The notes beneath the pieces were generated by a model. It did no database searches. It was not told the DNA's origin and worked only from the letters and a program-made list of their open reading frames with translations. The translations under genes and the position numbers were made by a program. From Pavona decussata (Eukaryota): a stretch of DNA of 64,000 nucleotides. Below, one piece after another: positions 2,580 to 46,700 of this stretch (position 1 is the stretch's first letter; every line of letters begins with the position of its first letter). Location of the stretch: NCBI GenBank assembly GCA_977016875.1, contig CDRNST010000188.1:2232001-2296000 (forward strand). Direction: 5' to 3'.

Positions 2580-2651
2580 AGGAGGGTCAGCTTTGATAAT
2601 TTGGAGAATATTCCAGCCGGAAGACTTCGAAGTTTATTCGTATACAAGTAC
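2580..2651 (-). CDS. LRR exon [24 protein letters not shown]
   Basis: 72 bp; acceptor tttcttgcag, donor gtaagt; open frame. Confidence 0.92.
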
Positions 2652-10700: not shown

Positions 10701-13700
10701 TGATAGGTTTCCTAGGCCTGGTCACGTCCTCTTTGATTTACTTAAATACCTGTTCTTTCATCTTTTTTTTTTATATGAACTTTCCATATCAATGTTTTAA
10801 AGTTGGCGTAATCTCCGACAATCCTGTCCGTGCAAACTATTTCCCTACCCCACCCCCACAATCCTTTGTCTGTCTGTTGTGTAACGCATTCCAATGCATC
10901 CGATGACGCTCCGGCTAAAAAAAAGGAGCTGTTTATTTTCAGTTCTCAGGTATTTATATTTTACACATATATTTATTTCTCCCACCAGAAAAAACTTACC
11001 TTTATGCTGTCTATTAAGATTTAGAAATGATAGAAAGTCATTGTCCTTTACGGCTTACCACAGGGCACCCACACAAACTATGTGACCGTTTGTATTTTGA
11101 ATTTATAGAGGCAATGTATGGGAATATCGAAAATCCTCGTATTATCGTACTAGATTGCGATAGATATTCTCATTAAACATCAAAATAAACGTAGTTTTAC
11201 CTTAAATGTTGTGTGTTGTCGTTCCTGACGTTGAAGACGGCGATTTTAGCCATTTGAAGGGTTCGGCGTTGAACGTTCACTCTAGCGTAATAGAAGAGTC
11301 ACTCTTCTTTTGAATGCGTGACAAGGAACTGCGTAATTTGACCGTTGGGTCACTTTTGTTTGGCGCTCTAAAATTTAATATTTAACGTAGCCCAAAAATT
11401 TTATTGCAGTTATTTGAAGATGAAACCTTGCTCTTTCGCTCGATGTACTTGATATGAAACCACGCTCCGCTAAAATCGGCGAAATATGGAAAAAAAATTT
11501 CGTTCGCGATGGAATTGAACAAATAACACTTCAGACTATTCCTAAATATGAATTCTTTTGATCAAGGATTGAATGGTCGGATTTACTGTTATGTTTATTC
11601 TTAGGCGACTTTCAAGTAACGTATGGTGTGGACGCTGTGAAAATTGATGTGGGAGCGGCCAAACCGACTTTGTTGCCGTTCGCGTAAAATAAAAATCTAA
11701 TCGAACTCAAAGTATTTTTTGTATTAATACTTCATCTAGACCAATTTTGGGAATTTTCGATTTTTTTCATTTTGCACACCTCCAGGCGAAATTTCTGGAT
11801 TGCCGCTCTTAAGCGCTTTTAAGGAAACATTAAAGTGCCCATAACAGAATTTTTTTTTATTTTCTCATCTGAATCTAAACATAACCATAAGACATTCAAA
11901 TTTGCCGCCATTTTGGCCCACCATTCGCATTAGTCTCCTCTCGGTTTAGCAAGAGCTGTGACGTAGATTCAGGAACACGTGACTTCAGCCTTTCTCTGAA
12001 TCTCACTGAAAACAAGTCGCGGCATTTCTGCACGTTTCTCGAAAATGTCGGAAAGATGTGTGGCAGCGAGATGTGGAAATATCAAAGACGAAGCGAATGG
12101 AATAAGCATGCACAGGATTCCTTCCTTTGGCACCACATGCCCGCAAAGACTGAGGAGGCGAAAGAAATGGATCGATTTTATGCTGGAGCGGAGGAAGATG
12201 TGGACGCTTGGAAAGACCTCGTCCTTGTGCTCGATGCACTTCAATGAGGAGAATTTCACAAGGCTGATGAATTCAGGTTTAAACGTAAAACGTGAACTGA
12301 AGTAGGATGACATCAGCGTTTGTGTTTATCCTTCAAAACATGCTAAGCGAAAGGAAGACGAAGATCAAGAGCCACCTTCGAAGAGGAGCAGGGAAAAGCG
12401 AATGGTAAGCTTTTGATAAATATTCACACCCGCTTGTGGCATTCTAAGCGTTGTAACTTTCTAAGGTTTATAGTTTGACCTCACTGTTAACTTAGTCGCA
12501 AGTTTTATAAAATGTGGCGTAATTGTTTTGGTATATATTCTCATAGATCGTGAGATCCGCGAAGTTTCGTTTAGACCAAGCTCTCAAAAAATACTAGCAC
12601 AAATGTTAGCACTGATGTAAATAGATCGACGCGAGAACAGTCGCACTCGGTGAACACAGAAAACATTGTAAACCACGATGTAGATAAGGTAGATAAACTG
12701 CAGCAAGAATTCAACGAGCTCAAACAAATATTGTACAAACATGTGTTGCAGAATTCTGCAGACAATAAAAATGTTGAAAAGTATAGCAGTGTTATCTCTG
12801 AAAACCTAGCCACCACAACGGGGGTTCAAAATAAAAAAGGGCACAAAGCAAATAACAAGTGCAAAGAGCGCAGAAAAATATTGGCTAAAAAACAGATTCA
12901 GACACAAAGAGAAAAACACGAGAAATTCATAAGGAATTTTTCAAACCAACAACTTAGCGACAGCCTGTTAGCGTTATTTCTAAAGGGCTCCAATTTGTCC
13001 TGACACCGGTGACAGACGCGAATTACATTAGACGCCAACTCTTTGTAACTCTTGTTAGACTTCGAACATTTCGCAAGACGTATGCCTAAAAGATACAATG
13101 GATTTCGTAAACTTTATAGGAAAGACCAAGGTCTCTCAAGATACTATCTTGGTATCAATGGATGCAACAAGCTTGTATACAAATATACCACAGGAGGAGG
13201 GAATTACAACAGTATGCAGAGCATACGAGGCATTCCACAGCAATAAACCTCCTATACCGTAACACTACCTCAAAGAAATACTTAAACTTATTCTTCAGGA
13301 AAATTCATTCCAAGTTGTTGGAAACAATTATCTCCAGACCCATGGAACTGCAATGGGTACAAAAATGGCCGTTGCGTTTGCAAACATATGGCCGATATTG
13401 AAACAAAAGTGATAAGTCAAAGCAAAACAAAACCAATAGCAATAGAATGGAAACGTTTTATTGATGACATTTTCTCACTGTGGGACGGTGAGAAAAAGGA
13501 AATTAACCTGTTCATTGAACAAGCTAACAACTTCCATCCTACAATTAAATTTACGGCCGAAATTTCAGAGAACGAGACAAGCTATTATTATCACAGTTCA
13601 ACACGTGTCTCTCCTGTAGTTCCGCGAGAACAATGCCGCTGGTCAGCGCTTCCCAATTGCCTTCGAGTTACTTGCAGCAGTAGCACTCGCTGATATTTGC

Positions 13701-16700
13701 TAGCAGATCACGGCTACAGTTACCTCAAGTACACCTACATGGAAAATAATTCGTTCGAATGTATGTGAGTACTTGGCCATAGTTTTGACAGATGATAATG
13801 AAGAGCGCGTATGCAAAATGCAAGGTGAGAACTTTACCATCCACAAACACGCACTCTATTCTCCAAGCGTTTTGTTAAATCTTCCTCGAGTCGTCACTTC
13901 TCCTCTTGTTCCTTGCGATATCTTTTTAGCCATTTTTCGTCTGCTATCGGCTCGTCCGCGTACGGTTCGAGTGTATCATCATCTTCACACGTATTACTTG
14001 TTTCGTGGACGCTATCTATCGCCTCGACTTCGACGCTTTCAAATTCGTCCTAGCAGCTTTCTTCAGCGGTTTGCTCACTTTCCGTGTCAGATATTAAGTT
14101 TTCTGCCATGGAATATACTTATTTGGAGCTAATTTTTTCCTTCCTACCGGTGAATCTGACGATTTTCTTTCTGCCGCGAACGGACTTTACTGAAGGTCAA
14201 ATGAGTGCATAGACACGAGAGTTCCTGAATCTACGTCACAGACTATGTCACGGGGCCCTGTCGTGAGCCCGTCGGCATTCTTACCAGCGGGGCGGATTGA
14301 CCGCAATAAAATAGGATTTCAAAGATTTGTAAAATTAATAACAAATTCGCGTTTTATGCTAATCGTAAAAAATTTTCGCGGACGTTCTGTTCAGATTCAG
14401 ATAAGAAAATAAAAAAAAATTCAGTTATGGGCACTTTAAGCTCCACTGACGACAAGTTACAATATGGTTGGTATAACTCTCTAATTTCGAATAATGTCAC
14501 ATAAAAAAAGATCTCCAAAACTTTTTCCTTACCACCCCTGTGGTAAAGGAAAACAAATCCCTTATCAACTTACAGGAGGGTCAACTTTGATAATTTCGAG
14601 AATACTCCAGCCGGAAGACTTTGAAGTTTATTCGTATCCAAGTACCTGCAAGAAATAGGACATTGGTCAATTTTAATTGGTAAGGAGAAATCACGTGCAT
14701 AGCCACGTGCATACTAATAAATAATAATAAATTTAAATTTATACCGCGCAGTTTCTATAAAAATATTCAACTGCGCCTTACAATAAATATTAAATTCAAA
14801 ATAAAATGGAAGTTCAAAATTACAATTCTAAAATTCCATAAATAAATAAAATAATTCATCAATAATGCAAATTAATTATAATAACTATAGTAACTAATTA
14901 AATGCCCCATTAAATAAAAAAGTTTTAAGTCTAATTTAAAAAATATCTAAACTGGAAATAGATCTTATTGTGATAGGAAGCAGATTCCAAAGTCAAGGGG
15001 CAGAACAACTAAACGATCTATCCGCCAGGGTCTTCTTGGTTCTTATTGTCGGGAAAGCTAATAAGGTTGCAGAGTCATCGTTGCGCCTTAAATTATAGAT
15101 TATACCTAGACGGCGGCAAGATAGTAAATGACGTTAGTAATCAGGCGCCATACCATGTAATACCTTAAATACGAACATAAGTGACATTGTCAAGGCCATA
15201 TGAAAACAAATTCAAATGAAACACCGAGAAATGTCGAAGGTCTTAACCTTTTTTGTAGTTTAACATTCCGAATCTCTACTGCTTGCTTCGTTGTTACAGA
15301 TATCATTTAGGTAACACTGCAGTCTGAATATCACTCAAAAGATATGATGGCTTGGAAAACAATGATTCCTTTAGTTATGTTTCAAACGAGACATCTTTTT
15401 GAAAAGTCAGAACTGAAGTGTTGGTCATGATTTGAATATCATCATCAGTATCTTGACCAACAAATATAGTAAAAAAAAATGGAAAAACAATCAAATGAAT
15501 AAATCAACAAATTGGTCTTCAAAACGTAAATTCAACATGAAAATATAAAAAACCTCAACTTACAGTCTTTGCAGATTGTTCAGTTTAGAGAATACAGTTC
15601 CCGACAGTTCAGCGATTGAGTTACTTCCAAGATACCTAATCAAGTTGAAAGGTATAAAAGAAAAAAAAAATCAGTAATAGGTGGTTTGCATCGCCGTCAT
15701 GTTGGTGTACAGAACAAAAGAAAAAAAATTGTTCACAAAGTTTGCATAAAAATGGCAGGTAACTCCCAGAGGAGAAAAATCTTATTGTCCCGTCTGACCT
15801 CTTCGTTGCTTCAGTTCGTTGCTCTACTAACTTTGCATTCGGGTAACTGTTCATTTTGTGAGTTTGTCATAAGCCCATGGAAGATAATTAAGTAAATTAA
15901 AGACGATATATCTGAGCTGCATGGTGGGCTTTCTTTAATATCCAACTTGATTATTTGTGAGGCTTGGACGAACTGAGCTATCCAGCCAGCTGGGTGGTGG
16001 TCATATTCCCGTGGAGGATGAATAAATTAAAGTAGATATATCAAATCCAGCGAATTTGGATTACGTAGGAAACATTTAAATACAAGGAAGATAATTGCAG
16101 TTACCGTACGCAACTTGAGCACTTTGTAAAACGAAGCTTGAAAGTAACATAAAATAATAAAAATAAACCAAGCTTGCTTTTCGCAACTGCTCAAGTAGCG
16201 TACACTGTACGTATTGAGCGTTTTAAAAAGACGCGAAAGGCCACCGAAGATAAGTTCGCTGGCAGAAGTAATGATTTAGGCAACCGTTGGCGCTATTTTT
16301 ACCAACTTTTCGTGAAACCCACGTCTCACTATGTTGTAACGCTTTGGCCTTAATCGCGACTCCCGCCCTTTCCCACCACCCAACGCTGTTTGGAAAATTA
16401 ATAGCGCTAGGCTAAAAACCTACAAAAGATATGACTTTGCCAGTACATCCAACATTGCGCATTGGGGGGGGGGGGGGGGGGGGGGGGAGTGGTGGTCGAA
16501 CGCATTATAACACTTGTACCTAGTGACGATATGTTGTTGTTGTACTTTATCCTTGATAGAATCATGCTTCCTTTCCCACAATTCAATGTTCTTAGACGCT
16601 GAAAAGCGATTCAAAAGATGTCGAGTTCCTTGTACTATCCAACATTGCACCGGGACAAAGGGGGCGGATGGCCAAACTGGAATTAAGGTCCTTTTGGAGT

Positions 16701-19700
16701 ATATCACAAATAACAAAAATCAGTCGCGTGATTACCAGTTAGGGGAAGCTGTAACATAACGCTTTTCAGGGCTACTGCTTTCAAGATTGGCCTCGTTCTC
16801 AAATTCAAAAACCTGGTTGTTATGATTTGTTTGTAGTGTCAACCAGTAAGTGTTTGAGGCTTTAAAAGACAATAAACTGAGCGTAAACTTCGTTTGCCGT
16901 TTCATACCAACAAAACTCAAAATGCCTCTTTTTTGCGTCCTGTAGCAAACTAAGCTAAAAAACATACATCTTTGCATTGTAGTCTTTGATTCAAAGTCTC
17001 ATTTAGAAAGCAAAATTCCCTAATGACAGCAAACCTTAATCTCTCGACCAAACATTTGTCTTCAATTTTGCCTCTCACGCCTGTACAGCGAATCGAGCAG
17101 GAATTTAAACTCTTAAATTATTGAATTTTAAGCCGACTTAATTGTTCCAATACACTCATTTCTCCTTGACCTGTCACCCTTTAAACACAGAAAAGGATAT
17201 TTATTATAGGAGAAGCACTTCGGCTCCTACAGACTAAATCAGTCCAAGATAAATTTCGAAATGTTGCTAACATTTCTTCCCCTCCCGAATTACAGGGAAG
17301 CTGAAATTCGAATACATTTTAACTGAAACTCCTTAGCTCTAGTTCATAGTTCTCCAAAGTGTTTTGTTACGCATTAATCTGATAACAGCCCGGTGTTCCG
17401 AATCTCCAGCAGAGGCATTCTAGTTATTTGTCGCTTAAGGGTCTTGCCAGCAACCGGTCCGTCCACCACTCGCACAAGGCCGTCAGGGCCAGGGTACGTC
17501 TGCTCGATGCGCCCAACATTCCACTGTCGCCTCACTCTACCGGGATCAATAACAACGACAACATCTTCAAACCGCAAATTGTCGTTACGGAAGTACCATT
17601 TCTGTCTTGATTCAATCTGCGGTATATATTGTTTCATCCATCGGTTCCACACGTCTTGTGAGCTCTTGTAGTCTTCTCCAGCGCTTTCTGGGATTAAATG
17701 GCTCGGTGTCGACGCTCTCTGGTACAAAATCGCCACCAATTTTTCTGATCAGAAAGTGATTTGGAGTCAAGACGCGCTCGTCGTTAGGATCGTCACTCAC
17801 AGCTGTTAAAGGTTTCGAATTCAGGAGACTTTCTACCCCAATCGAGATTGTCTCCAACTCCTTATATTAACTCCTGCATCACCGAGTACAGCAAAAATAG
17901 CTCGCTTTGCTGACTTAATCTTAGACTCAAAGACTCCACCAAAATGTGGCGCTGCAGTTGGGTTCAATTTCCAACTCACTCCTTTATTGGAGATCATCCG
18001 TTGTATCTTGTCTTAGTCTATAGCAGAGACTAGGTCTCGCAGTTCCCTCGATGCGCTTACAAAGTTCGTTCCATTGTATCTTAACATTTGCGGCGGCCAT
18101 CCTCTCCGCGCAGTCATTCTAACTAAAGCGTTAAAAAATGCATCAGTGTCCAAAGACGACGCCATCTCTAAGTGGCAACAATGGGTCTTCAAACAGAGAA
18201 ACAAACACAAATAGCGCTTAGCTCGCACTCTTCCACGTCCTTGCTTAGTTAAGAAAGGTCCTCCAAAGTCTATTGCACAGCTCTCGAAAGGTCTGGGGGA
18301 TTGCTGCAGTCTAATCTTCGGTAACGGGGCCATTTGCTAGTGAGCTGGCTATAATCGAAATCGTTTCGCACACCCAAAACATTCTCTTATGACTCTTTTT
18401 ACTTGTTCACGAACATGGGCCCCTACGTATTTCTCCTGTACATGATTAATCGTATAGTTAAGCCCCATCTGATGACCCTCTAATTATTGGTAGTACTTAA
18501 CGATCAGTTCTGTGACATGATTCCTCTTAGGCAGTATGATTGGACACTTCACATCATATGAGAGATCGTCTGCATGTCGTAGTCTGGTGTTGGACCTCAA
18601 AATGCCATTAGCTAATACTGGATAAAACGGTGCCAATGCACTTCCTCTTAGCATCACCTAGTTCCTTCTCATTAGCTCTATCTCTGCTGCGTACACTTTA
18701 GACTGAACCTCCCGAATGATAAATTCCTCAGCGTTTTGAATCTCCAATGGCTTCAGTTTACCCTTCTCTCCCTGTTCAGCTGGTTTCCAACAATTGTCTG
18801 TAAATCGGCGCACCCACGCTGTCACACGACAACCCAATTTCCAGTTCTCCTTTTCTTTTGACTCGATACCATTTCGAGTATCTTGAGGGTTCCAATTGCC
18901 ACACCTCTTCGACACCAGCCTATTCTTCACCTTCTTTAATTATTTGGTAACTGATAGCATCCTTTGTCCCTGTTTCTTTTGTTCCTTTAAGTTCAAGGTT
19001 CTCTGTTGACGTTGGCTTGTTAAACTTCCACTCTGGCCAGTCTTGTTTTGACTTCTTCAGATATTCGGGTCATAAGTCCACCATAGGTCTGCGCTTGCTA
19101 ACTCTTCTACTGTCAGACATTTTGTCCCAGGGTCGGCGGGGTTTACATCCGTAGGAACATAGCCCCACTGATTAGGAGCAGAGAACTCATGAATTTCTCC
19201 AACATGATGGGCTATGAACGGTCTATACTCTCTACTCTGACCTTGGATCCAGTAACCCACATTCACACTGTCCACCCAATAGGTCACTCCATTTGTTGGT
19301 ATCTTGAGTGGAGAGCAAAGTTTTCTTGTTAATCGTAATCCAATGAGTGCACCCAAAAGTTCAAATCTGGGGATGCTCACTGCTTTCAATGGTGCCAGCC
19401 GAGACTTCGGCATAATCATTCGAGCAGTGACATTTAAATCCTCATACACATGACGTGCGTAAACCATAGCTGTATGTGCGTTCTCTGACGCGTCACTGAA
19501 TGTATAAATGCTCAGTTCTTCCATATTAAGACTTCGGTCTTTCAAACACCTTGGGATTTTCACAAGTTCAAGGTCTTCCAAGTCTTGGAACCACTTTGTC
19601 CATTCTTGCTGATGAGGTGTCGGCAACAGTTCATCCCAATCCCGTGCCTCCAGCCATGCCATTTGTATCAACAACTTGAACCTGATTACATTAAAGGTGA

Positions 19701-22700
19701 TAAGAATCCTAACGGGTCGTAAACTGCTGCTTTTCGCCTCAAAACATTTCTCTTGGTGAATTCAAATCCATCTAACTGTAACAAGTGTCTAAAGGAAAAT
19801 TCTTCCCTTGTGGCGGCCCAGGACACTCAGCTTTATGAATCGACTTTATTTAAACACGGTAAATGGCTCAGCAAGCTGGTTTTCAGACATGCCGTGTGAT
19901 AATTACAAATTACAAATTGACCCCTCAAATTGTAGTCATGAATTTCAGAGGTTCTATGAAACCGCTCCCTAAGGTACGTCGGACAATTACTATTGAATAC
20001 TTTAAACATTGTATCTAATAAGTGCCTTTTTCTTCTTTCTTCTGAGTTTGTCCACTCCAAAGAATTTAGTACATCTGATAATCTGATAGAGTAATCAGTC
20101 CGAGTAATAATCCGTGCTGCTCTATTTTGTAACTTTTGCAATTTGTCAGCACGTGTTTTGGAACAGTCACCCCATACAATATCACAATAGTCAAAGTAGG
20201 GCTGGACAAGTGAATAGTAAATAGTTTTAAGAGTCTCTTGATTATCGGTTAGTTTTCTAGCTAAATACAGCATTCGCAGGCCATTAAAGACTTTGGATGA
20301 AATATTTTTGATCTGATTATCGCAGGTTAGCATTTCATCAATATGAACCCCCAGTAACTTAGCAGAGGGTTTATGTTCAATAGGTCTATTATCCAACTCT
20401 AGATTCATGAACTTGGCATTTGCCAAATTATGCCGAGAGCCAATTGTCATATAACTAGTTTTAGAAGTATTGGAACTTAATGTGTTTGTCTAATCCAATT
20501 ATGTGCTGCAATTAAGTCACTATTTATAAAGAAGATTCAATTCCGGATATATCTTTATGAGCTGTAGTTATATATGTATCATCGGTAAACATACCAGGCG
20601 TTGTATGCTGCAGATTAGGGAAAATCGTTTATATAAATTATGAACAACAGTGGTCCAAGTATAGAGCCCTGGCGAATGCCACATGATATATATCGTTCTG
20701 TGGATAAGACCCCATTTACACAACATCTCTGTGTTCTGCCAGTCAAATATGATATATGATTTACGCAGCTGGAGAGCATTGCCATTGACACCATAACAAC
20801 GCAGCTTACGTAGTAAGATGTAATGGTCAACAGTGTCGAAGGCTTTCCTTAAGTTGATAAATACACTACCATTAAGTTTACCAGCATCCATGTTGGCAAG
20901 CCAAAGGTTTACTGCACTTATCAAAGCTGTAGAGGTTGAATAATTTGGTCTAAAGGCAGATTGAGACTCAGTTAAAAGATTACCTGCTTGAAAATATTCT
21001 AACAGCTGAGAGTGCATGACCTTTCCACAATTTTCGATATGGCAGGTAGAATAGAAATCGGTCGGTAGTTGCTTGGAACATTTCTTTCATCCGACTTAAT
21101 AATAGGATGTACTTTTGCCTTTTTCCAATCATCAGGAAATATTCCAGTCTCCATCTCATGATTAATAATATCACATATAGAGTCTGAGATATACGCACTA
21201 AAAAGCTTTAAGAGTCTACTAGCTAGTAATGTTATCTAGCCCACACTGCCTTGCTGAGGGTTTAAGATCGGAAATAAGGTTTAGAATACATCCTACGTTT
21301 GTCGGGCGAAAACAAAAATTTAAATCGGTTCTATTTAAAAAATCCTCTGGTTGAGAAGCAGTATCAGGGATACCAGATGCCAGCTTACTACCTAGCGAAC
21401 AAAAGTGATTATTCATTTGTTCAGCTATATCTTGCTTTTGTACAAAATCTTTGCCCTCATAAAGAAGTTCATTTATAATTGTCATTTTAGGCTTGCAACC
21501 CAGGGAAATATGCAAACGAAACGCAAAAGACGAAAACCAACAAAAAACAACGAAAAACTCCGCTATTTACCTTTGTGTCTCTTGAAGTATTTTAAAACAA
21601 AAATTCAAATCTGGAGGTTGTTGGTTACCCGTGGCGATTGAATGACATTTAGATGTAATAATTGTTGCATTTTGAAAGGAAGAAAAAAGGAAGAAAAAAA
21701 AAATGAGTGGACCTAAAAATATTCAATTTCCCTAAGTTACTCACAGTGTTCGAAGATGTATTAGTTCCGAGAATACTTGTTCCGGCAGCTCAGCAATCCT
21801 GTTGCCACCAAGATCCCTGTAGAAGAGAAGTGAAAAAAAAATCAAACTGATATGTTATTCTTTTTTACACTTTCCATTAAAATATTAAATTTTTACATCA
21901 TTTGGCGATGGTGAAAACACGCTCTAAAACATCAAGGACTTTTCTAAAACTTCATTTATGCCGCGACACCGGCTCTGTTCTTCTTTTCCTGACGATGACA
22001 CTGCACACCAAAAGACCTTATAGACCTCAAAGATAGCGTTTACTTAAATAATCCGATATCCGATACGCTCAGCCTGATAACACGTGCCTCTATTCTCCAA
22101 TTCGACGGCGACGCATGAATTAGATTATGCTATAATGTAATCCTGTTTTTTGTTGTTGTTGTTGTTTGGCACAATTTGATAGTTTCAAGGTAAAAAGCAG
22201 TCAAAAGTACAAAAGTAGTCCGAGTACAACAAAAATAGCTCGCTTTGCTGACTTAATCATAGATTCAAAGACTTCACCGAAATGTGGTGCTGCAGTTGGG
22301 TTCCATTGGCAAATCACTCGCAGTTCCCTTTATGCGCTTACAAAGTTCGTTCCATTGTCTCTTAACATTTGCTGCGGCCAGCCTCTCCGCGCAGTCATTC
22401 TGACTAAAGCGTTAAGAAATGCATCAGTGTTCAAAGACGACGCCATCTCTAAGTGTCAACAATGAGTCTTCAAACAGAGAAACAACACAAATAGCGCTTA
22501 GCTCGCACTCTTCCACGTCCTTTCACAGCTCTCGAAAGGTCTGGGGGATTGCTGCAGTCTAATCTTCGGCATCGGATCCATTTGCTGGTGAGCTGGCTTT
22601 GACCGAAATCGTTTCGCACACTCAAAACATTCTCTTATGACTCTTTTTACTTGTTCACGAACATGGACCGCTTAGTATTTCTCCCGTACATGATTAATCG

Positions 22701-34700: not shown

Positions 34701-37700
34701 CTGACACCGGTGACAGACGCGAATTACATTAGACGCCAACTCTTTGTAACTCTTGTTAGACTTCGAACATTTCGCAAGACGTATGCCTAAAAGATACAAT
34801 GGATTTCGTAAACTTTATAGGAAAGACCAAGGTCTCTCAAGATACTATCTTAGTATCAATGGATGCAACAAGCTTGTATACAAATATACCACAGGAGGAG
34901 GGAATTACAACAGTATGCAAAGCATACGAGGCATTCCACAGCAATAAACCTCCTATACCGTAACACTACCTCAAAGAAATACTTAAACTTATTCTTCAGG
35001 AAAATTCATTCCAAGTTGTTGGAAACAATTATCTCCAGACCCATGGAACTGCAATGGGTACAAAAATGGCCGTTGCGTTTGCAAACATATGGCCGATATT
35101 GAAACAAAAGTGATAAGTCAAAGCAAAACAAAACCAATAGCAATAGAATGGAAACGTTTTATTGATGACATTTTCTCACTGTGGGACGGTGAGAAAAAGG
35201 AAATTAACCTGTTCATTGAACAAGCTAACAACTTCCATCCTACAATTAAATTTACGGCCGAAATTTCAGAGAACGAGACAAGCTATTATTATCACAGTTC
35301 AACACGTGTCTCTCCTGTAGTTCCGCGAGAACAATGCCGCTGGTCAGCGCTTCCCAATTGCCTTCGAGTTACTTGCAGCAGTAGCACTCGCTGATATTTG
35401 CTAGCAGATCACGGCTACAGTTACCTCAAGTACACCTACATGGAAAATAATTCGTTCGAATGTATGTGAGTACTTGGCCATAGTTTTGACAGATGATAAT
35501 GAAGAGCGCGTATGCAAAATGCAAGGTGAGAACTTTACCATCCACAAACACGCACTCTATTCTCCAAGCGTTTTGTTAAATCTTCCTCGAGTCGTCACTT
35601 CTCCTCTTGTTCCTTGCGATATCTTTTTAGCCATTTTTCGTCTGCTATCGGCTCGTCCGCGTACGGTTCGAGTGTATCATCATCTTCACACGTATTACTT
35701 GTTTCGTGGACGCTATCTATCGCCTCGACTTCGACGCTTTCAAATTCGTCCTAGCAGCTTTCTTCAGCGGTTTGCTCACTTTCCGTGTCAGATATTAAGT
35801 TTTCTGCCATGGAATATACTTATTTGGAGCTAATTTTTTCCTTCCTACCGGTGAATCTGACGATTTTCTTTCTGCCGCGAACGGACTTTACTGAAGGTCA
35901 AATGAGTGCATAGACACGAGAGTTCCTGAATCTACGTCACAGACTATGTCACGGGGCCCTGTTGTGAGCCCGTCGGCATTCTTACCAGCGGGGCGGATTG
36001 ACCGCAATAAAATAGGATTTCAAAGATTTGTAAAATTAATAACAAATTCGCGTTTTATGCAAATCGTAAAAAATTTTCGCGGACGTTCTGTTCAGATTCA
36101 GATAACAAAATAAAAAAAAATTCAGTTATGGGCACTTTAAGCTCCACTGACGACAAGTTACAATATGGTTGGTATAACTCTCTAATTTCGAATAATGTCA
36201 CATAAAAAAAGATCTCCAAAACTTTTTCCTTACCACCCCTGTGGTAAAGGAAAACAAATCCCTTATCAACTTACAGGAGGGTCAACTTTGATAATTTCGA
36301 GAATACTCCAGCCGGAAGACTTTGAAGTTTATTCGTATCCAAGTACCTGCAAGAAATAGGACATTGGTCAATTTTAATTGGTAAGGAGAAATCACGTGCA
36401 TAGCCACGTGCATACTAATAAATAATAATAAATTTAAATTTATACCGCGCAGTTTCTATAAAAATATTCAACTGCGCCTTACAATAAATATTAAATTCAA
36501 AATAAAATGGAAGTTCAAAATTACAATTCTAAAATTCCATAAATAAATAAAATAATTCATCAATAATGCAAATTAATTATAATAACTATAGTAACTAATT
36601 AAATGCCCCATTAAATAAAAAAGTTTTAAGTCTAATTTAAAAAATATCTAAACTGGAAATAGATCTTATTGTGATAGGAAGCAGATTCCAAAGTCAAGGG
36701 GCAGAACAACTAAACGATCTATCCGCCAGGGTCTTCTTGGTTCTTATTGTCGGGAAAGCTAATAAGGTTGCAGAGTCATCGTTGCGCCTTAAATTATAGA
36801 TTATACCTAGACGGCGGCAAGATAGTAAATGACGTTAGTAATCAGGCGCCATACCATGTAATACCTTAAATACGAACATAAGTGACATTGTCAAGGCCAT
36901 ATGAAAACAAATTCAAATGAAACACCGAGAAATGTCGAAGGTCTTAACCTTTTTTGTAGTTTAACATTCCGAATCTCTACTGCTTGCTTCGTTGTTACAG
37001 ATATCATTTAGGTAACACTGCAGTCTGAATATCACTCAAAAGATATGATGGCTTGGAAAACAATGATTCCTTTAGTTATGTTTCAAACGAGACATCTTTT
37101 TGAAAAGTCAGAACTGAAGTGTTGGTCATGATTTGAATATCATCATCAGTATCTTGACCAACAAATATAGTAAAAAAAAATGGAAAAACAATCAAATGAA
37201 TAAATCAACAAATTGGTCTTCAAAACGTAAATTCAACATGAAAATATAAAAAACCTCAACTTACAGTCTTTGCAGATTGTTCAGTTTAGAGAATACAGTT
37301 CCCGACAGTTCAGCGATTGAGTTACTTCCAAGATACCTAATCAAGTTGAAAGGTATAAAAGAAAAAAAAAAATCAGTAATAGGTGGTTTGCATCGCCGTC
37401 ATGTTGGTGTACAGAACAAAAGAAAAAAAATTGTTCACAAAGTTTGCATAAAAATGGCAGGTAACTCCCAGAGGAGAAAAATCTTATTGTCCCGTCTGAC
37501 CTCTTCGTTGCTTCAGTTCGTTGCTCTACTAACTTTGCATTCGGGTAACTGTTCATTTTGTGAGTTTGTCATAAGCCCATGGAAGATAATTAAGTAAATT
37601 AAAGACGATATATCTGAGCTGCATGGTGGGCTTTCTTTAATATCCAACTTGATTATTTGTGAGGCTTGGACGAACTGAGCTATCTAGCCAGCTGGGTGGT

Positions 37701-40700
37701 GGTCATATTCCCGTGGAGGATGAATAAATTAAAGTAGATATATCAAATCCAGCGAATTTGGATTACGTAGGAAACATTTAAATACAAGGAAGATAATTGC
37801 AGTTACCGTACGCAACTTGAGCACTTTGTAAAACGAAGCTTGAAAGTAACATAAAATAATAAAAATAAACCAAGCTTGCTTTTCGCAACTGCTCAAGTAG
37901 CGTACACTGTACGTATTGAGCGTTTTAAAAAGACGCGAAAGGCCACCGAAGATAAGTTCGCTGGCAGAAGTAATGATTTAGGCAACCGTTGGCGCTATTT
38001 TTACCAACTTTTCGTGAAACCCACGTCTCACTATGTTGTAACGCTTTGGCCTTAATCGCGACTCCCGCCCTTTCCCACCACCCAACGCTGTTTGGAAAAT
38101 TAATAGCGCTAGGCTAAAAACCTACAAAAGATATGACTTTGCCAGTACATCCAACATTGCGCATTGGGGGGGGGGGGGGGGGGGGAGTGGTGGTCGAACG
38201 CATTATAACACTTGTACCTAGTGACGATATGTTGTTGTTGTACTTTATCCTTGATAGAATCATGCTTCCTTTCCCACAATTCAATGTTCTTAGACGCTGA
38301 AAAGCGATTCAAAAGATGTCGAGTTTCTTGTACTATCCAACATTGCACCGGGACAAAGGGGGCGGATGGCCAAACTGGAATTAAGGTCCTTTTGGAGTAT
38401 ATCACAAATAACAAAAATCAGTCGCGTGATTACCAGTTAGGGGAAGCTGTAACATAACGCTTTTCAGGGCTACTGCTTTCAAGATTGGCCTCGTTCTCAA
38501 ATTCAAAAACCTGGTTGTTATGATTTGTTTGTAGTGTCAACCAGTAAGTGTTTGAGGCTTTAAAAGACAATAAACTGAGCGTAAACCTCGTTTGCCGTTT
38601 CATACCAACAAAACTCAAAATGCCTCTTTTTTGCGTCCTGTAGCAAACTAAGCTAAAAAACATACATCTTTGCATTGTAGTCTTTGATTCAAAGTCTCAT
38701 TTAGAAAGCAAAATTCCCTAATGACAGCAAACCTTAATCTCTCGACCAAACATTTGTCTTCAATTTTGCCTCTCACGCCTATACAGCGAATCGAGCAGGA
38801 ATTTAAACTCTTAAATTATTGAATTTTAAGCCGACTTAATTGTTCCAATACACTCATTTCTCCTCGACCTGTCACCCTTTAAACACAGAAAAGGATATTT
38901 ATTATAGGAGAAGCACTTCGGCTCCTACAGACTAAATCAGTCCAAGATAAATTTCGAAATGTTGCTAACATTTCTTCCCCTCCCGAATTACAGGGAAGCT
39001 GAAATTCGAATACATTTTAACTGAAACTCCTTAGCTCTAGTTCATAGTTCTCCAAAGTGTTTTGTTACGCATTAATCTGATAACAGCTCGGTGTTCCGAA
39101 TCTCCAGCAGAGGCATTCTAGTTATTTGTCGCTTAAGGGTCTTGCCAGCAACCGGTCCGTCCACCACTCGCACAAGGCCGTCAGGGCCAGGGTACGTCTG
39201 CTCGATGCGCCCAACATTCCACTGTCGCCTCACTCTACCGGGATCAATAACAACGACAACATCTTCAAACCGCAAATTGTCGTTACGGAAGTACCATTTC
39301 TGTCTTGATTCAATCTGCGGTATATATTGTTTCATCCATCGGTTCCACACGTCTTGTGAGCTCTTGTAGTCTTCTCCAGCGCTTTCTGGGATTAAATGGC
39401 TCGGTGTCGACGCTCTCTGGTACAAAATCGCCACCAATTTTTCTGATCAGAAAGTGATTTGGAGTCAAGACGCGCTCGTCGTTAGGATCGTCACTCACAG
39501 CTGTTAAAGGTTTCGAATTCAAGAGACTTTCTACCCCAATCGAGATTGTCTCCAACTCCTTATATTAACTCCTGCATCACCGAGTACAGCAAAAATAGCT
39601 CGCTTTGCTGACTTAATCTTAGACTCAAAGACTCCACCAAAATGTGGCGCTGCAGTTGGGTTCAATTTCCAACTCACTCCTTTATTGGAGATCATCCGTT
39701 GTATCTTGTCTTAGTCTATAGCAGAGACTAGGTCTCGCAGTTCCCTCGATGCGCTTACAAAGTTCGTTCCATTGTATCTTAACATTTGCGGCGGCCATCC
39801 TCTCCGCGCAGTCATTCTAACTAAAGCGTTAAAAAATGCATCAGTGTCCAAAGACGACGCCATCTCTAAGTGGCAACAATGGGTCTTCAAACAGAGAAAC
39901 AAACACAAATAGCGCTTAGCTCGCACTCTTCCACGTCCTTGCTTAGTTAAGAAAGGTCCTCCAAAGTCTATTGCACAGCTCTCGAAAGGTCTGGGGGATT
40001 GCTGCAGTCTAATCTTCGGTAACGGGGCCATTTGCTAGTGAGCTGGCTATAATCGAAATCGTTTCGCACACCCAAAACATTCTCTTATGACTCTTTTTAC
40101 TTGTTCACGAACATGGGCCCCTACGTATTTCTCCTGTACATGATTAATCGTATAGTTAAGCCCCATCTGATGACCCTCTAATTATTGGTAGTACTTAACG
40201 ATCAGTTCTGTGACATGATTCCTCTTAGGCAGTATGATTGGACACTTCACATCATATGAGAGATCGTCTGCATGTCGTAGTCTGGTGTTGGACCTCAAAA
40301 TGCCATTAGCTAATACTGGATAAAACGGTGCCAATGCACTTCCTCTTAGCATCACCTAGTTCCTTCTCATTAGCTCTATCTCTGCTGCGTACACTTTAGA
40401 CTGAACCTCCCGAATGATAAATTCCTCAGCGTTTTGAATCTCCAATGGCTTCAGTTTACCCTTCTCTCCCTGTTCAGCTGGTTTCCAACAACTGTCTGTA
40501 AATCGGCGCACCCACGCTGTCACACGACAACCCAATTTCCAGTTCTCCTTTTCTTTTGACTCGATACCATTTCGAGTATCTTGAGGGTTCCAATTGCCAC
40601 ACCTCTTCGACACCAGCCTATTCTTCACCTTCTTTAATTATTTGGTAACTGATAGCATCCTTTGTCCCTGTTTCTTTTGTTCCTTTAAGTTCAAGGTTCT

Positions 40701-43700
40701 CTGTTGACGTTGGCTTGTTAAACTTCCACTCTGGCCAGTCTTGTTTTGACTTCTTCAGATATTCGGGTCATAAGTCCACCATAGGTCTGCGCTTGCTAAC
40801 TCTTCTACTGTCAGACATTTTGTCCCAGGGTCGGCGGGGTTTACATCCGTAGGAACATAGCCCCACTGATTAGGAGCAGAGAACTCATGAATTTCTCCAA
40901 CATGATGGGCTATGAACGGTCTATACTCTCTACTCTGACCTTGGATCCAGTAACCCACATTCACACTGTCCACCCAATAGGTCACTCCATTTGTTGGTAT
41001 CTTGAGTGGAGAGCAAAGTTTTCTTGTTAATCGTAATCCAATGAGTGCACCCAAAAGTTCAAATCTGGGGATGCTCACTGCTTTCAATGGTGCCAGCCGA
41101 GACTTCGGCATAATCATTCGAGCAGTGACATTTAAATCCTCATACACATGACGTGCGTAAACCATAGCTGTATGTGCGTTCTCTGACGCGTCACTGAATG
41201 TATAAATGCTCAGTTCTTCCATATTAAGACTTCGGTCTTTCAAACACCTTGGGATTTTCACAAGTTCAAGGTCTTCCAAGTCTTGGAACCACTTTGTCCA
41301 TTCTTGCTGATGAGGTGTCGGCAACAGTTCATCCCAATCCCGTGCCTCCAGCCATGCCATTTGTATCAACAACTTGAACCTGATTACATTAAAGGTGATA
41401 AGAATCCTAACGGGTCGTAAACTGCTGCTTTTCGCCTCAAAACATTTCTCTTGGTGAATTCAAATCCATCTAACTGTAACAAGTGTCTAAAGGAAAATTC
41501 TTCCCTTGTGGCGGCCCAGGACACTCAGCTTTATGAATCGACTTTATTTAAACACGGTAAATGGCTCAGCAAGCTGGTTTTCAGACATGCCGTGTGATAA
41601 TTACAAATTACAAATTGACCCCTCAAATTGTAGTCATGAATTTCAGAGGTTCTATGAAACCGCTCCCTAAGGTACGTCGGACAATTACTATTGAATACTT
41701 TAAACATTGTATCTAATAAGTGCCTTTTTCTTCTTTCTTCTGAGTTTGTCCACTCCAAAGAATTTAGTACATCTGATAATCTGATAGAGTAATCAGTCCG
41801 AGTAATAATCCGTGCTGCTCTATTTTGTAACTTTTGCAATTTGTCAGCAAGTGTTTTGGAACAGTCACCCCATACAATATCACAATAGTCAAAGTAGGGC
41901 TGGACAAGTGAATAGTAAATAGTTTTAAGAGTCTCTTGATTATCGGTTAGTTTTCTAGCTAAATACAGCATTCGCAGGCCATTAAAGACTTTGGATGAAA
42001 TATTTTTGATCTGATTATCGCAGGTTAGCATTTCATCAATATGAACCCCCAGTAACTTAGCAGAGGGTTTATGTTCAATAGGTCTATTATCCAACTCTAG
42101 ATTCATGAACTTGGCATTTGCCAAATTATGCCGAGAGCCAATTGTCATATAACTAGTTTTAGAAGTATTGGAACTTAATGTGTTTGTCTAATCCAATTAT
42201 GTGCTGCAATTAAGTCACTATTTATAAAGAAGATTCAATTCCGGATATATCTTTATGAGCTGTAGTTATATATGTATCATCGGTAAACATACCAGGCGTT
42301 GTATGCTGCAGATTAGGGAAAATCGTTTATATAAATTATGAACAACAGTGGTCCAAGTATAGAGCCCTGGCGAATGCCACATGATATATATCGTTCTGTG
42401 GATAAGACCCCATTTACACAACATCTCTGTGTTCTGCCAGTCAAATATGATATATGATTTACGCAGCTGGAGAGCATTGCCATTGACACCATAACAACGC
42501 AGCTTACGTAGTAAGATGTAATGGTCAACAGTGTCGAAGGCTTTCCTTAAGTTGATAAATACACTACCATTAAGTTTACCAGCATCCATGTTGGCAAGCC
42601 AAAGGTTTACTGCACTTATCAAAGCTGTAGAGGTTGAATAATTTGGTCTAAAGGCAGATTGAGACTCAGTTAAAAGATTACCTGCTTGAAAATATTCTAA
42701 CAGCTGAGAGTGCATGACCTTTCCACAATTTTCGATATGGCAGGTAGAATAGAAATCGGTCGGTAGTTGCTTGGAACATTTCTTTCATCCGACTTAATAA
42801 TAGGATGTACTTTTGCCTTTTTCCAATCATCAGGAAATATTCCAGTCTCCATCTCATGATTAATAATATCACATATAGAGTCTGAGATATACGCACTAAA
42901 AAGCTTTAAGAGTCTACTAGCTAGTAATGTTATCTAGCCCACACTGCCTTGCTGAGGGTTTAAGATCGGAAATAAGGTTTAGAATACATCCTACGTTTGT
43001 CGGGCGAAAACAAAAATTTAAATCGGTTCTATTTAAAAAATCCTCTGGTTGAGAAGCAGTATCAGGGATACCAGATGCCAGCTTACTACCTAGCGAACAA
43101 AAGTGATTATTCATTTGTTCAGCTATATCTTGCTTTTGTACAAAATCTTTGCCCTCATAAAGAAGTTCATTTATAATTGTCATTTTAGGCTTGCAACTCA
43201 GGGAAATATGCAAACGAAACGCAAAAGACGAAAACCAACAAAAAACAACGAAAAACTCCGCTATTTACCTTTGTGTCTCTTGAAGTATTTTAAAACAAAA
43301 ATTCAAATCTGGAGGTTGTTGGTTACCCGTGGCGATTGAATGACATTTAGATGTAATAATTGTTGCATTTTGAAAGGAAGAAAAAAGGAAGAAAAAAAAA
43401 ATGAGTGGACCTAAAAATATTCAATTTCCCTAAGTTACTCACAGTGTTCGAAGATGTATTAGTTCCGAGAATACTTGTTCCGGCAGCTCAGCAATCCTGT
43501 TGCCACCAAGATCCCTGTAGAAGAGAAGTGAAAAAAAAATCAAACTGATATGTTATTCTTTTTTACACTTTCCATTAAAATATTAAATTTTTACATCATT
43601 TGGCGATGGTGAAAACACGCTCTAAAACATCAAGGACTTTTCTAAAACTTCATTTATGCCGCGACACCGGCTCTGTTCTTCTTTTCCTGACGATGACACT

Positions 43701-46700
43701 GCACACCAAAAGACCTTATAGACCTCAAAGATAGCGTTTACTTAAATAATCCGATATCCGATACGCTCAGCCTGATAACACGTGCCTCTATTCTCCAATT
43801 CGACGGCGACGCATGAATTAGATTATGCTATAATGTAATCCTGTTTTTTGTTGTTGTTGTTGTTTGGCACAATTTGATAGTTTCAAGGTAAAAAGCAGTC
43901 AAAAGTACAAAAGTAGTCCGAGTACAACAAAAATAGCTCGCTTTGCTGACTTAATCATAGATTCAAAGACTTCACCGAAATGTGGTGCTGCAGTTGGGTT
44001 CCATTGGCAAATCACTCGCAGTTCCCTTTATGCGCTTACAAAGTTCGTTCCATTGTCTCTTAACATTTGCTGCGGTCAGCCTCTCCGCGCAGTCATTCTG
44101 ACTAAAGCGTTAAGAAATGCATCAGTGTTCAAAGACGACGCCATCTCTAAGTGTCAACAATGAGTCTTCAAACAGAGAAACAACACAAATAGCGCTTAGC
44201 TCGCACTCTTCCACGTCCTTTCACAGCTCTCGAAAGGTCTGGGGGATTGCTGCAGTCTAATCTTCGGCATCGGATCCATTTGCTGGTGAGCTGGCTTTGA
44301 CCGAAATCGTTTCGCACACTCAAAACATTCTCTTATGACTCTTTTTACTTGTTCACGAACATGGACCGCTTAGTATTTCTCCCGTACATGATTAATCGTA
44401 TAGTTAAGCCCCATCAGATGACCTTCTAATTATTGGTAGTACTTAACGATCAGTCCTGTGACATGATTCCTCTTAGGAAGTATGATTGGACACTTCACAT
44501 CATATGAGAGATCGTCTGCATGTCGTAGTCTAGTGTTGGACCTCAAAATGCCATTAACTAATACTGGATTAAACGGTGCCAATGCACTTCCGCTTAGGAT
44601 TTAATTGTTCCTTCTCAATGGCTCTATCTCTGCTGCGTACAGTCTTTAGACTGAATATCCCGAATGATAAATTCCCCAGCGTTTTAAAGCAACAAATGGC
44701 TTCAGTTCACTCTTCTCTCCCTGTTCAGCTGGTTTCCTACAATTGCCTGTAAATCGGCGCACCCACGCTGTCACACGAACTAAAGAAAACCCAATTTCCA
44801 GTTCTCCTTTTCTTTTTAACTCGATACCATTTCGAGTATCTTTAGGGTTCCAATCGCCACACCTCTTCGACACCAGCCGTTTCTTCACCTTCTTTATTTA
44901 TTTGGTAACTGATAGCATGGATCTTTTGTCCCTGTTTCTTTTGTTCCTTTAAGTTCAAGGTTCTCTGTTGACGTTGGCTTGTTAAACTTCCACACTGGCC
45001 AGCCTTGTTTTGACTTCTTCAGATATTCGGGTCATAAGTCCACCATAAGTCTGCGCTTGCTAACTCGTCTACTGTCAGACCTTTTGTCCCAGGGTCGGCG
45101 GGGTTTACATCCGTAGAAACATAGCCCCACTGATTAGGAGCAGAGAACTCATGAACTTCTCCAACATGATGGGCTATGAACGGTTTATACTCTCTACTCT
45201 GACCTTGGATCCAGTACCCCACATTCACACTGTCCACCCAATGGGTCACTCCATTTGTTGGTATCTTGAGTGCAAAGAAAACTTGTCTTGTTAATCGTAA
45301 TCCGATGGGTGCACCCAAAAATTCTAATCTGGGGATGCTCACTGCTTTCAATGGTGCCATCCGAGACTTCGAAATAAGCATTCGAGCAGTGATGTTGCCA
45401 TCCTCATACACACGACATGCATAAACTATAGCTGTATGTGCGTTCTCTGACGCGTCACTGAATGTATAAATGCTCAGTTTTTCCACCTTGAGACTTGGGT
45501 CTTTCAAACACATTGGGATTTTTACAAGTTCAAGGTCTTCCAAGTCTTGGAATCACTTTGTCCATTCTTGCTGATGAGGTGTCGGCAACAGTTCATCTCA
45601 ATTCCGTGCCTACAGCCTTGCCATTTGTATCAACAACTTGAACGTGATTACAAAAGGAGATAAAAAGCGTAAAGGGTCGTAAACTGCTGCTTTTTGCCTC
45701 AAAACATTCCTCTTGGTGAATTCAAATCCATCTAGGAGAATTCGCCCCTTGTAGCGGCCCNNNNNNNNNNNNNNNNNNNNNNNNNNNNNNNNNNNNNNNN
45801 NNNNNNNNNNNNNNNNNNNNNNNNNNNNNNNNNNNNNNNNNNNNNNNNNNNNNNNNNNNNNNNNNNNNNNNNNNNNNNNNNNNNNNNNAATCAATCATTT
45901 TTTAAAAAGTCGCGCTCTCTCATTTTCTGCCTCAGTCCAGCTGTTATCCACAGTGAAGATTTACTTTTCACTTTTCTTTTCTCTCATCGGGGCATGTTCG
46001 TTTACAACTTCCAGAAATAGAGATTTCCAGACATCCCACATCTCGTTTGGGTCATCCATAAGAGAAGCAAAGTGGAAAGGTGTCTCTTTAATGTCTTTGA
46101 TGAAGGCATCACAATCAAAATTTTTGTCTAGATTCTATTATTTTTGGGTCAGCTTTCAGTGTATCATCTTTATGAGTAGCATAGATAAGATTGATAAGAT
46201 AAGACTGTCTGGTTATTAGTAAATATGTGATCTCTTAGTGTTCTAGTGCTAGAAGTTATTCTCGTTGGTTGGTCTATTAATTAAATGTATTGGTAAGTTT
46301 CAGTAATGAACTTTAAGTGTTCCGCCTTGTGGGCAAACGTTTGCGACAGGAGATTACAATTTCTATCACCCATAATAGTACTCTCTTTATCTTCTTGGTC
46401 AATTTTTAGTAGGTACGATTAAAATTTGTCAAAAATTTCGACCTTCGAATCTGGAGGTCTATACCAAGTTGTCACCAAGAAAGGCTTGGACAAGAGTAAC
46501 AGATTCTGTCTGTTATCCACAGTGAAGATTTCAACAGAAACTCAACAAGACTGAACAGAAACTTACACGACTACAACGTACTAAAGACAAAAAAAGACAC
46601 AAGACAGACGACAACTGGGTCAGGAATATTTCTTCCCGTCCTCTAGACAAGACTGAAACCTAGGTATTCTCCTACGGACTGAAACACTCAGTGACGCCTA

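Follow-up and report, generated by a model that had tools for sequence, protein, structure and literature searches.

Intragenic Repeat Blocks in Known Genes and in Pavona decussata

An in-frame, multi-exon tandem repeat lies within the LPA gene, where the segregating copy number of the kringle IV-2 block sets protein length; this polymorphism is proven and its phenotypic effects are known, in a domain type and an organism other than those of the coral block described below. In human nebulin (NEB), a multi-exon block of a repeat protein is present three times in tandem with very high identity and with the frame kept, and the number of blocks varies through recurrent unequal exchange, copy-number variation having been demonstrated in people (PMC9109913, PMC9142044).

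The stretch of DNA analyzed here (the window, 64,000 nucleotides of Pavona decussata contig CDRNST010000188.1) carries in a minus-strand gene a block, 12695-45241, of three head-to-tail 10.85-kb units. The block resembles the NEB triplicate region in that several exons of a repeat protein are present three times in tandem, near-identical and in frame, and its novel junction has been confirmed outside the assembly. The two differ in that the NEB block has eight exons whereas each 10.85-kb coral block has three, in that NEB is an actin-binding ruler whereas the coral exons encode an LRR ectodomain, and in that variation of block number is only suggested for the coral. Seen beside NEB, the coral triplication can be regarded as an ordinary kind of event. 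It is likely to be a real intragenic tandem segmental duplication that took two steps to form, and the coral gene in which it lies encodes a putative surface receptor.

Structure of the Tandem Block

12695-23545, minus strand: unit U1, first copy on the plus strand and 3'-most in the gene, adjoining the left flank
23546-34395, minus strand: unit U2, middle copy, with a junction at both ends
34396-45241, minus strand: unit U3, last copy, adjoining the right flank
23536-23554: U1/U2 junction, consisting of the unit end (...CCACCCAA), two extra A's and the unit start (AAACTGCAG...)
34386-34404: U2/U3 junction, the same string

The preliminary description had recognized three near-identical tandem units, and this is borne out by the two identical junctions and by a single 21.7-kb self-alignment at 99.82%, which corresponds to a unit identity of 99.8%. 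In the unit alignment, the copies are distinguished by 24 substitutions and a few homopolymer or microsatellite indels. The private substitutions of each copy and the different poly-G lengths reported earlier were both found again, the tract being 24, 21 and 20 long in U1, U2 and U3 (at 16464, 27315 and 38166). The junction string has only two occurrences in the whole 602-Mb assembly. The presence of a haplotig of the locus elsewhere in the assembly was ruled out, the unit-unique parts being confined to one contig.

About two thirds of the unit derives from transposons, in agreement with the earlier view that it is mostly transposon DNA. The transposon parts of U1 are a high-copy element (12695-14440), Pao/BEL-like and RT fragments (about 17.4-21.5 kb) and a further fragment (22.2-23.5 kb). 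The outer breakpoints of the block fall in or near the following features.

11887-14440: high-copy transposon with at least 40 genomic copies, 91-96% identical, containing the left breakpoint (12695)
44219-45734: Pao/BEL-like retroelement fragment containing the right breakpoint (45241)
45761-45888: N run, 520 bp past the block, a mask of exactly 128 bases

The breakpoints have no mutual homology and lie inside two different transposons, which are intact in other genomic copies. The Pao/BEL-like fragment containing the right breakpoint is 92% identical to a fragment inside the unit, at 18273-19774. An interpretation of the N run as a scaffold gap was rejected, since contigs L015, L018 and L020 are collinear with the window across exactly 128 bases.

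LRR Exons and Size of the Array

21745-21816 (U1), 32595-32666 (U2), 43443-43514 (U3), minus strand: D-type LRR exon, 72 bp, AG/GT, phase 2
15564-15635 (U1), 26414-26485 (U2), 37265-37336 (U3), minus strand: YLGS-type LRR exon, 72 bp, AG/GT, phase 2
14574-14645 (U1), 25424-25495 (U2), 36275-36346 (U3), minus strand: YLDT-type LRR exon, 72 bp, AG/GT, phase 2
2295-2366, minus strand: intact LRR exon with a GTATGT donor; another 11 LRR exons come after it, 3' of the window
2580-5997, minus strand: older, diverged copy of the three-exon module (exons 5926-5997, 3112-3183 and 2580-2651)
53823-56205, minus strand: upstream intact LRR exons of the same gene (56134-56205, 54728-54799 and 53823-53894)

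Sixteen intact LRR exons lie within the window and 11 further 3' of it, which makes 27 over the locus. An open frame, the exact length and canonical splice sites are found in all 27, as is an LRR motif, one repeat per 72-bp exon, with a 24-residue period, an LxxLxLxxNxI/L core and a hydrophobic ladder after it. Single exons score 14.6-22.2 bits with Pfam LRR_8 (E 1e-4 to 0.03), a model that spans two repeats and has a gathering threshold of 27 bits, so that a lone repeat is expected to fall short of it; the D-type exon of U1 reaches E=0.029 as a single repeat. Within each of the D, YLGS and YLDT types, the nine duplicated exons are identical in sequence across the copies.

Each LRR exon begins at the third codon base and ends on the first two codon bases. 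Because all of them are 72 bp long and have both boundaries in phase 2, the frame is kept with every added unit, which contributes three LRRs, and the array numbers 21, 24 or 27 LRRs for one, two or three units, respectively. The preliminary description was thus correct in placing both breakpoints in introns and in concluding from this that the frame is kept, the exons being phase-symmetric. Its growth from 9 to 15 repeats was a window-limited count, the locus-wide change being from 21 to 27, and the exon at 2295-2366, which it had taken as terminal or broken, is in fact intact. A gene end by a stop at this exon was also considered and rejected; the apparent stop is intronic, past the GTATGT donor. 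The same gene holds older duplications of the three-exon module and of two-exon modules, and intron stretches of the module at 2580-5997 are 90-94% identical to the 10.85-kb unit.

Predicted Gene Product

By sequence similarity, the gene product belongs to a coral family of multipass membrane proteins with LRR, ephrin-receptor-like and DUF7630 parts. It is a putative surface receptor in which at least 27 LRRs are combined with a Cys-rich ephrin-receptor-like part, with DUF7630 and with a multipass membrane domain. The 27 single-LRR exons are distributed over more than 65 kb of a gene whose total extent exceeds 85 kb. A search with its 562-aa exon (L012:2331-4016, minus strand) yields, at E<=1e-3, 841 homologues, and PF24633 is annotated on most homologues among the matches listed. 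Identity reaches 62% to members annotated with LRR, Ephrin_rec_like, DUF7630 and multipass domains, and the atlas neighbours of this exon are of the same family kind. Its own Pfam matches are sub-threshold (DUF7630, E=0.009; TRP, E=0.001), as are those of two exons on L005 with CPxGxF motifs (E 0.014-0.021); these Cys-rich exons are 65-72% identical to the matching part of four Oculina proteins that carry a PF07699 annotation.

The likeness to this scleractinian family lies in the shared C-terminal region and in the order of the linker, Cys-rich and last exons, which is the same in family proteins. Annotated relatives, at 309-983 aa (a range set by the length limit of the search), have room for about 4-10 LRRs, whereas the Pavona gene has 27. 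At NCBI, family members bear the names 'putative leucine-rich repeat-containing protein DDB_G0281931' (Montipora) and uncharacterized protein (Oculina patagonica). We know of no member with a tested function, and a literature search with the family name and "coral" gave no match. The 5' exon was not found by tblastn with four relatives, and the acceptor of a candidate exon at 58692 is defective.

The Array in Other Assemblies

The identical junction, the two extra A's included, is present on contigs of two independent ENA assemblies, ERZ25073805 (L014/L020) and ERZ25073751 (L015/L021); the tandem duplication is real and not an invention of the assembler. ERZ25073751 represents another haplotype, because its flanks differ from the reference by 0.04-0.3%. 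Each of the two assemblies resolves two copies, with both contig sets ending inside the array, and three copies are seen in the reference assembly only.

The private substitutions of U1 (12738 A, 13219 G) are common to the first copy of ERZ25073805. Of the 18 substitutions that set U3 apart from U1 and U2, six recur in the last copy of each of the other two assemblies and ten are private to the reference assembly; the U2-private and U3-private alleles have no match in any other assembly on record. A copy-specific ORF occurs in its U1 type on four contigs, and in its U2 and U3 types nowhere else on record. Although about 17 kb of flanks are 100% identical between ERZ25073805 and the reference, the last unit of the former differs from U3 at 8 sites, so that either two array haplotypes with identical flanks exist or copies have been mixed in one assembly.

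Sequencing runs were examined as Logan contigs. No junction-bridging contig occurs among the longest Logan DNA contigs listed, one side of the junction being a transposon at thousands-fold depth. Contig depths vary from run to run, at about 275 for X1 and about 120 and 289 for X3, and are not convertible to copy number. An exact search of JGI metagenome contigs with the junction 25-mer gave no match, an uninformative result, and a cluster look-up of the junction-spanning ORF returned no further samples.

Proposed Origin of the Array and Alternative Explanations

Divergence among the units is hierarchical, with 0.055% between U1 and U2 and about 0.19% for U3. The differences look like real mutations, because they are transition-biased (17 transitions vs 7 transversions) and spread evenly over the unit. 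U2 agrees at 12738 (C) and 13219 (A) with those copies that have the junction on their left, and at the six sites that separate first and last copies in all assemblies it has first-copy alleles; it also has four private substitutions (13737 G, 20207 A, 20585 A and 21437 G) and a private TC indel. Hence U2 looks like a last-copy/first-copy hybrid, a mixture of alleles that is the product expected from unequal crossing-over. The differences between first and last copies are found only in the left 4.9 kb of the unit (9 vs 0, p=0.001; 12 vs 0, p=0.0001), and this confinement shows exchange between copies.

Under the two-step model, a non-homologous tandem duplication of the replication- or end-joining type would first have joined the breakpoint in the Pao-like fragment to that in the unrelated high-copy transposon, giving a two-copy array that is now common to several haplotypes. 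On the reference haplotype, unequal crossing-over between a last and a first copy would then have reused the junction and created U2, and ongoing exchange between copies may continue to reshuffle the array. The term "very recent", which had been applied to the whole triplication, is appropriate for the third copy only and not for the first duplication, which is common to haplotypes whose flanks differ by 0.04-0.3%.

That both extra copies arose together in a single event, for example by a replication template switch, is very improbable. The identity of the two junctions accords with such an event, but a homology-driven step that reuses the first junction predicts it equally well; moreover, the numbers of private substitutions (2 in U1, 4 in U2 and 18 in U3) are not star-like (chi-square p=7.5e-5), and the junction is found on other haplotypes with two resolved copies only. 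The duplication might instead be real but over-counted in the reference, each haplotype having two copies and material of the second haplotype having been threaded in as a third unit. This is unlikely, although it deserves more weight than a single event: both independent assemblies resolve just two copies, the U2- and U3-private alleles are absent from them, and ERZ25073805 combines the same flanks with a different last unit. Against it, U2, with junctions on both sides, is neither of the first-copy type (12738 C, 13219 A) nor of the last-copy type (0/6 last-copy alleles), and so is not simply the first or last unit of the other haplotype. A false join would require a haplotype switch within about 0.5 kb, beside informative sites; in addition, the assembly holds no second version of the locus, and the N run beside the block reflects masking.

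It is also rather improbable that the extra exons never reach protein, the units being skipped in splicing or belonging to a decaying pseudogene, so that the block would be neutral structural variation. The duplication-specific YLDT-to-D splice was not seen in the RNA contigs, in which the D exon is uncovered; the sole RNA contig (X17 record 13) has a depth of about 4, the introns are full of transposons, and the broken acceptor at 58692 and the missing 5' end of the gene may be read in the same way. Nevertheless, this RNA contig joins YLGS to YLDT and YLDT to the exon at 5926-5997 precisely as predicted, matching the YLDT exon without mismatch, and is thus spliced through an exon of a unit. 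The intact state of all 27 LRR exons, with the nine duplicated ones identical within type, also speaks against decay, as do the downstream exons, whose frames are open and whose identity to annotated members of the family is 54-70%.

Implications for LRR Number

The locus illustrates how a gene with one repeat per exon can grow: as the LRR exons are phase-symmetric, any intronic breakpoints yield repeats gained in frame, transposon-filled introns are a source of breakpoints, and once two copies are present, homology drives further gain, loss and reshuffling. With two copies resolved elsewhere and three in the reference, a copy-number polymorphism of the block between colonies is plausible. More tentatively, alleles of two and three units may be actively segregating, which would make LRR number a length polymorphism, perhaps with a 2/3 heterozygote in the sequenced colony; it would be generated by recurrent unequal crossing-over together with gene conversion on haplotypes whose flanks are otherwise identical. 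If this is true, a putative recognition receptor would change its ectodomain length three LRRs at a time, and at a much higher rate than that at which point mutation alters the surrounding DNA. Should block number differ from colony to colony, this locus would provide a simple marker, and also a natural experiment on the length of the LRR ectodomain in a receptor-like family that is coral-expanded and uncharacterized. For annotation, the locus is a warning: the gene extends over more than 85 kb, its 27 exons are tiny and its blocks nearly identical, and assemblers and gene predictors may miscount such repeats.

Structure of the tandem block

Comparison of the window with itself gives one alignment of 21.7 kb with 99.82% identity (12695-34393 against 23546-45241) and a second of 10.85 kb with 99.77% identity, and these resolve into three head-to-tail units:

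12695-23545, unit U1, the 3′-most in the minus-strand gene
23546-34395, unit U2
34396-45241, unit U3, the 5′-most

Both junctions are the same: the end of a unit (...CCACCCAA) is followed by two A's, for which neither flank holds a template, and then by the start of the next unit (AAACTGCAG...). The 25-base junction sequence is found at two sites, both at unit borders, and nowhere else in the 602-Mb assembly. The preliminary description of near-identical tandem units is therefore correct, and the poly-G lengths that it reported (24, 21 and 20 in U1, U2 and U3) agree with a count of the tract. The three-way alignment of the units contains 34 variable columns, of which 24 are substitutions and the remainder a few indels in homopolymers or microsatellites.

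As had also been stated, the unit is mostly transposon DNA; only 14441-17600 and approximately 21600-22200 are unique to the locus. These parts occur three times on the contig CDRNST010000188.1 (C188) and not elsewhere, which rules out a stray haplotig in the assembly. Reverse-transcriptase and DUF5641 remnants make up about 17.4-21.5 kb. The breakpoints are intronic, share no homology and lie in two unrelated transposons. The left one (12695) is within a transposon (11887-14440) whose genomic copies continue unbroken across the breakpoint position; judging from its at least 40 copies with 91-96% identity, this family was probably active recently. Some family members carry an internal deletion, so that their matches to the query break at about 650/810. 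The right breakpoint (45241) is within a Pao/BEL-like retroelement fragment, which extends beyond U3 to 45734 and shares 92% identity with another fragment, internal to the unit, at 18273-19774. The only N run of the window (45761-45888) is located 520 bp past the block. Because independent contigs of two assemblies are collinear across it, with exactly 128 bases between the matches, this run is a mask, and a scaffold break is excluded.

Two further repeats lie in the introns beside the block. On its left, the two members of an inverted repeat pair (8081-8443 and 11464-11811), separated by about 3 kb, share 89% identity. Immediately 5′ of the block, a large minus-strand retroelement (46000-53500) has long gag-like, protease and integrase open frames; it is 100% identical in the ENA assembly ERZ25073805 and has 4 mismatches in 9.6 kb in a second, ERZ25073751.

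The gene and its LRR exons

The array gene is on the minus strand, and each unit carries three of its exons (U1 coordinates; equivalent copies in U2 and U3):

21745-21816, minus, D-type exon, 72 bp, AG/GT
15564-15635, minus, YLGS-type exon, 72 bp, AG/GT
14574-14645, minus, YLDT-type exon, 72 bp, AG/GT

The first base of each is the third base of a Leu codon and the last two are the first two of the next Leu codon, so that any whole number of exons keeps the frame; this anatomy bears out the earlier claim of intronic breakpoints and a preserved frame. None of the 24 substitutions among the units is exonic. In domain and homology searches run exon by exon, with the exons unjoined, the LRR_8 matches of single exons were consistent and below threshold.

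When the contig around C188:2232001-2296000 was fetched and the gene was followed past the window, the LRR array was found to run on in the 3′ direction. A scan for 72-bp exons with AG/GT borders, phase 2 and the LRR pattern gave 27, of which 16 are inside the window and 11 downstream; the proposed growth from 9 to 15 repeats is accordingly corrected to 21 to 27. The exon at 2295-2366 does not run into a stop, since a GTATGT donor is present. Further downstream, the gene continues with the following parts:

linker exon and Cys-rich ephrin-receptor-like exons
exon of 562 aa, containing DUF7630 and multiple membrane spans
one further 3′ exon, past a LINE insertion

The 562-aa exon has 841 homologues; those with names are scleractinian (Oculina patagonica, Montipora) and are annotated with LRR, Ephrin_rec_like and DUF7630, and none of them has a known function. 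A tblastn search with four relatives did not locate the 5′ end of the gene. A non-LTR retrotransposon (L011:4242-7307 of the fetched stretch; C188:2206242-2209307, minus), with a 1022-aa open frame encoding endonuclease and reverse transcriptase, occupies the intron that precedes the last exon. An LRR-like exon at 58690-58765 (minus) resembles the 2295-2366 type; its altered acceptor region leaves 70 instead of 72 bases, and it is probably dead.

Among Logan contigs of coral sequencing runs, examined over a 6-kb stretch centered on the junction, one RNA contig from run X17 (152 nt, depth 4) contains the final 8 nt of the YLGS exon and the whole YLDT exon without mismatch, followed by 71 nt of which the part shown is the start of the exon 5926-5997. 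The gene is thus transcribed and spliced exactly as predicted, through a unit exon. The duplication-specific joint from YLDT to D was not seen in the RNA contigs, whose coverage does not include the D exon. No DNA piece bridging the junction was present among the longest pieces listed; because only these are shown and the transposon to the right of the junction has thousands-fold depth, this says little.

An older copy of the three-exon module, about 10% diverged, is present in the same gene (exons 5926-5997, 3112-3183 and 2580-2651). Downstream, two-exon modules, each of one 'LQNNKIAF...' exon and one 'LSGNKIQSLPPGVF...' exon, are repeated three to four times in tandem every 2-3 kb (L006:300-8350; C188:2222300-2230350, minus) and represent an earlier round of similar intragenic duplication. 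Exon-block growth is therefore habitual for this gene. Paralogous sequences were also noted: an LRR region at C188:2365125-2365522, 73% identical to the D-exon neighborhood, and a large exon (438 aa, 93% identical) of the gene P0004 on a 360-kb ENA contig reaching upstream of the array. They suggest a local cluster of family members.

The junction in independent assemblies

An exact look-up of the junction-spanning ORF gave a match on the 360-kb contig of ERZ25073805, and a walk with further ORFs and mapping of the fetched loci then gave the layout in two assemblies. In ERZ25073805, this contig contains the right flank, one full unit, the junction and 1 kb of the preceding unit before it ends; a second contig contains the left flank and the first unit to position 23077, and the ends of these contigs share an overlap of 560 identical bases. 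Over 10 kb on the left and 6.8 kb on the right, the flanks match the window at 100% identity. In ERZ25073751, one contig has the right flank, one full unit, the junction and 3 kb of the preceding unit, and the 3′ part of the gene is on a separate contig, which is estimated to reach the first unit. The flanks in this assembly diverge from the reference by 0.04-0.3%, indicating another haplotype. The junction is thus present in three assemblies and at least two clearly different haplotypes, so the duplication is biological and not an assembler product.

Both ENA assemblies stop within the array, each with two copies resolved. In a 205-aa transposon ORF, each reference copy has a one-residue difference; four contigs carry the form found in U1, and those of U2 and U3 have no record outside the reference. 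The third copy is consequently attested by the reference assembly only.

History of the copies

U1 and U2 diverge by 0.055%, U1 and U3 by 0.184%, and U2 and U3 by 0.203%. The private substitutions (2, 4 and 18 in U1, U2 and U3) reject a simultaneous origin (p=7.5e-5). Transitions outnumber transversions among the differences (17:7), which are distributed evenly over the unit, a pattern that mutations, unlike read errors, would give.

When the units of the other assemblies were added, six alleles (13151 A, 14262 T, 14360 A, 16889 C, 17167 C and 17390 T) were found in all last copies (in plus-strand order) and not in first copies or U2, and two junction-adjacent alleles (12738 C and 13219 A) in U2 and every other copy that a junction adjoins on the left. 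U2 is therefore of last-copy type over a short stretch at its left end and of first-copy type in the rest, the expected product of unequal crossing-over between the last and first units of a two-copy array. Such an exchange also accounts for the identity of the two junctions. The reference U3 has ten alleles of its own. All differences between first and last copies fall within the left 4.9 kb (9 vs 0, p=0.001; 12 vs 0, p=0.0001), which argues that the right half was homogenized by exchange. The designation "very recent" may apply at most to the third copy; it does not hold for the first duplication, whose junction is common to at least two different haplotypes.

The ERZ25073805 array is unlike the reference array despite the identical flanks. 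This mismatch would fit a sequenced colony heterozygous for two array forms, an array that evolves faster than its flanks, or copies mixed in one of the assemblies. The existence of several array haplotypes is further supported by the runs, which contain alleles that none of the three reference copies has (C at 20956, for example); in X3, the combination of A at 25211 and G at 25256 matches the last unit in the ENA assemblies. Positions 20956 and 22206, with their U2 and U3 equivalents, are G and A in all three reference units, and C and C in both ERZ25073751 units and the first ERZ25073805 unit; X1 and X3 have C at 20956 and not C at 22206. Such sharing of alleles by the copies within a haplotype indicates concerted evolution.

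Possible mechanism

The block probably arose in two steps. A non-homologous tandem duplication, by end-joining or replication template switching, would have added the two A's, and a homology-driven event would then have produced the third unit. Each unit would lengthen the ectodomain by three LRRs, to give 21, 24 or 27. The closest documented analogue of the coral block is the nebulin triplicate region, in which eight exons are present three times and copy number varies through unequal exchange (PMC9109913, PMC9142044), and the block adds a well-supported case to this known class of events. Copy-number polymorphism, previously considered probable, is plausible and is proposed here tentatively.
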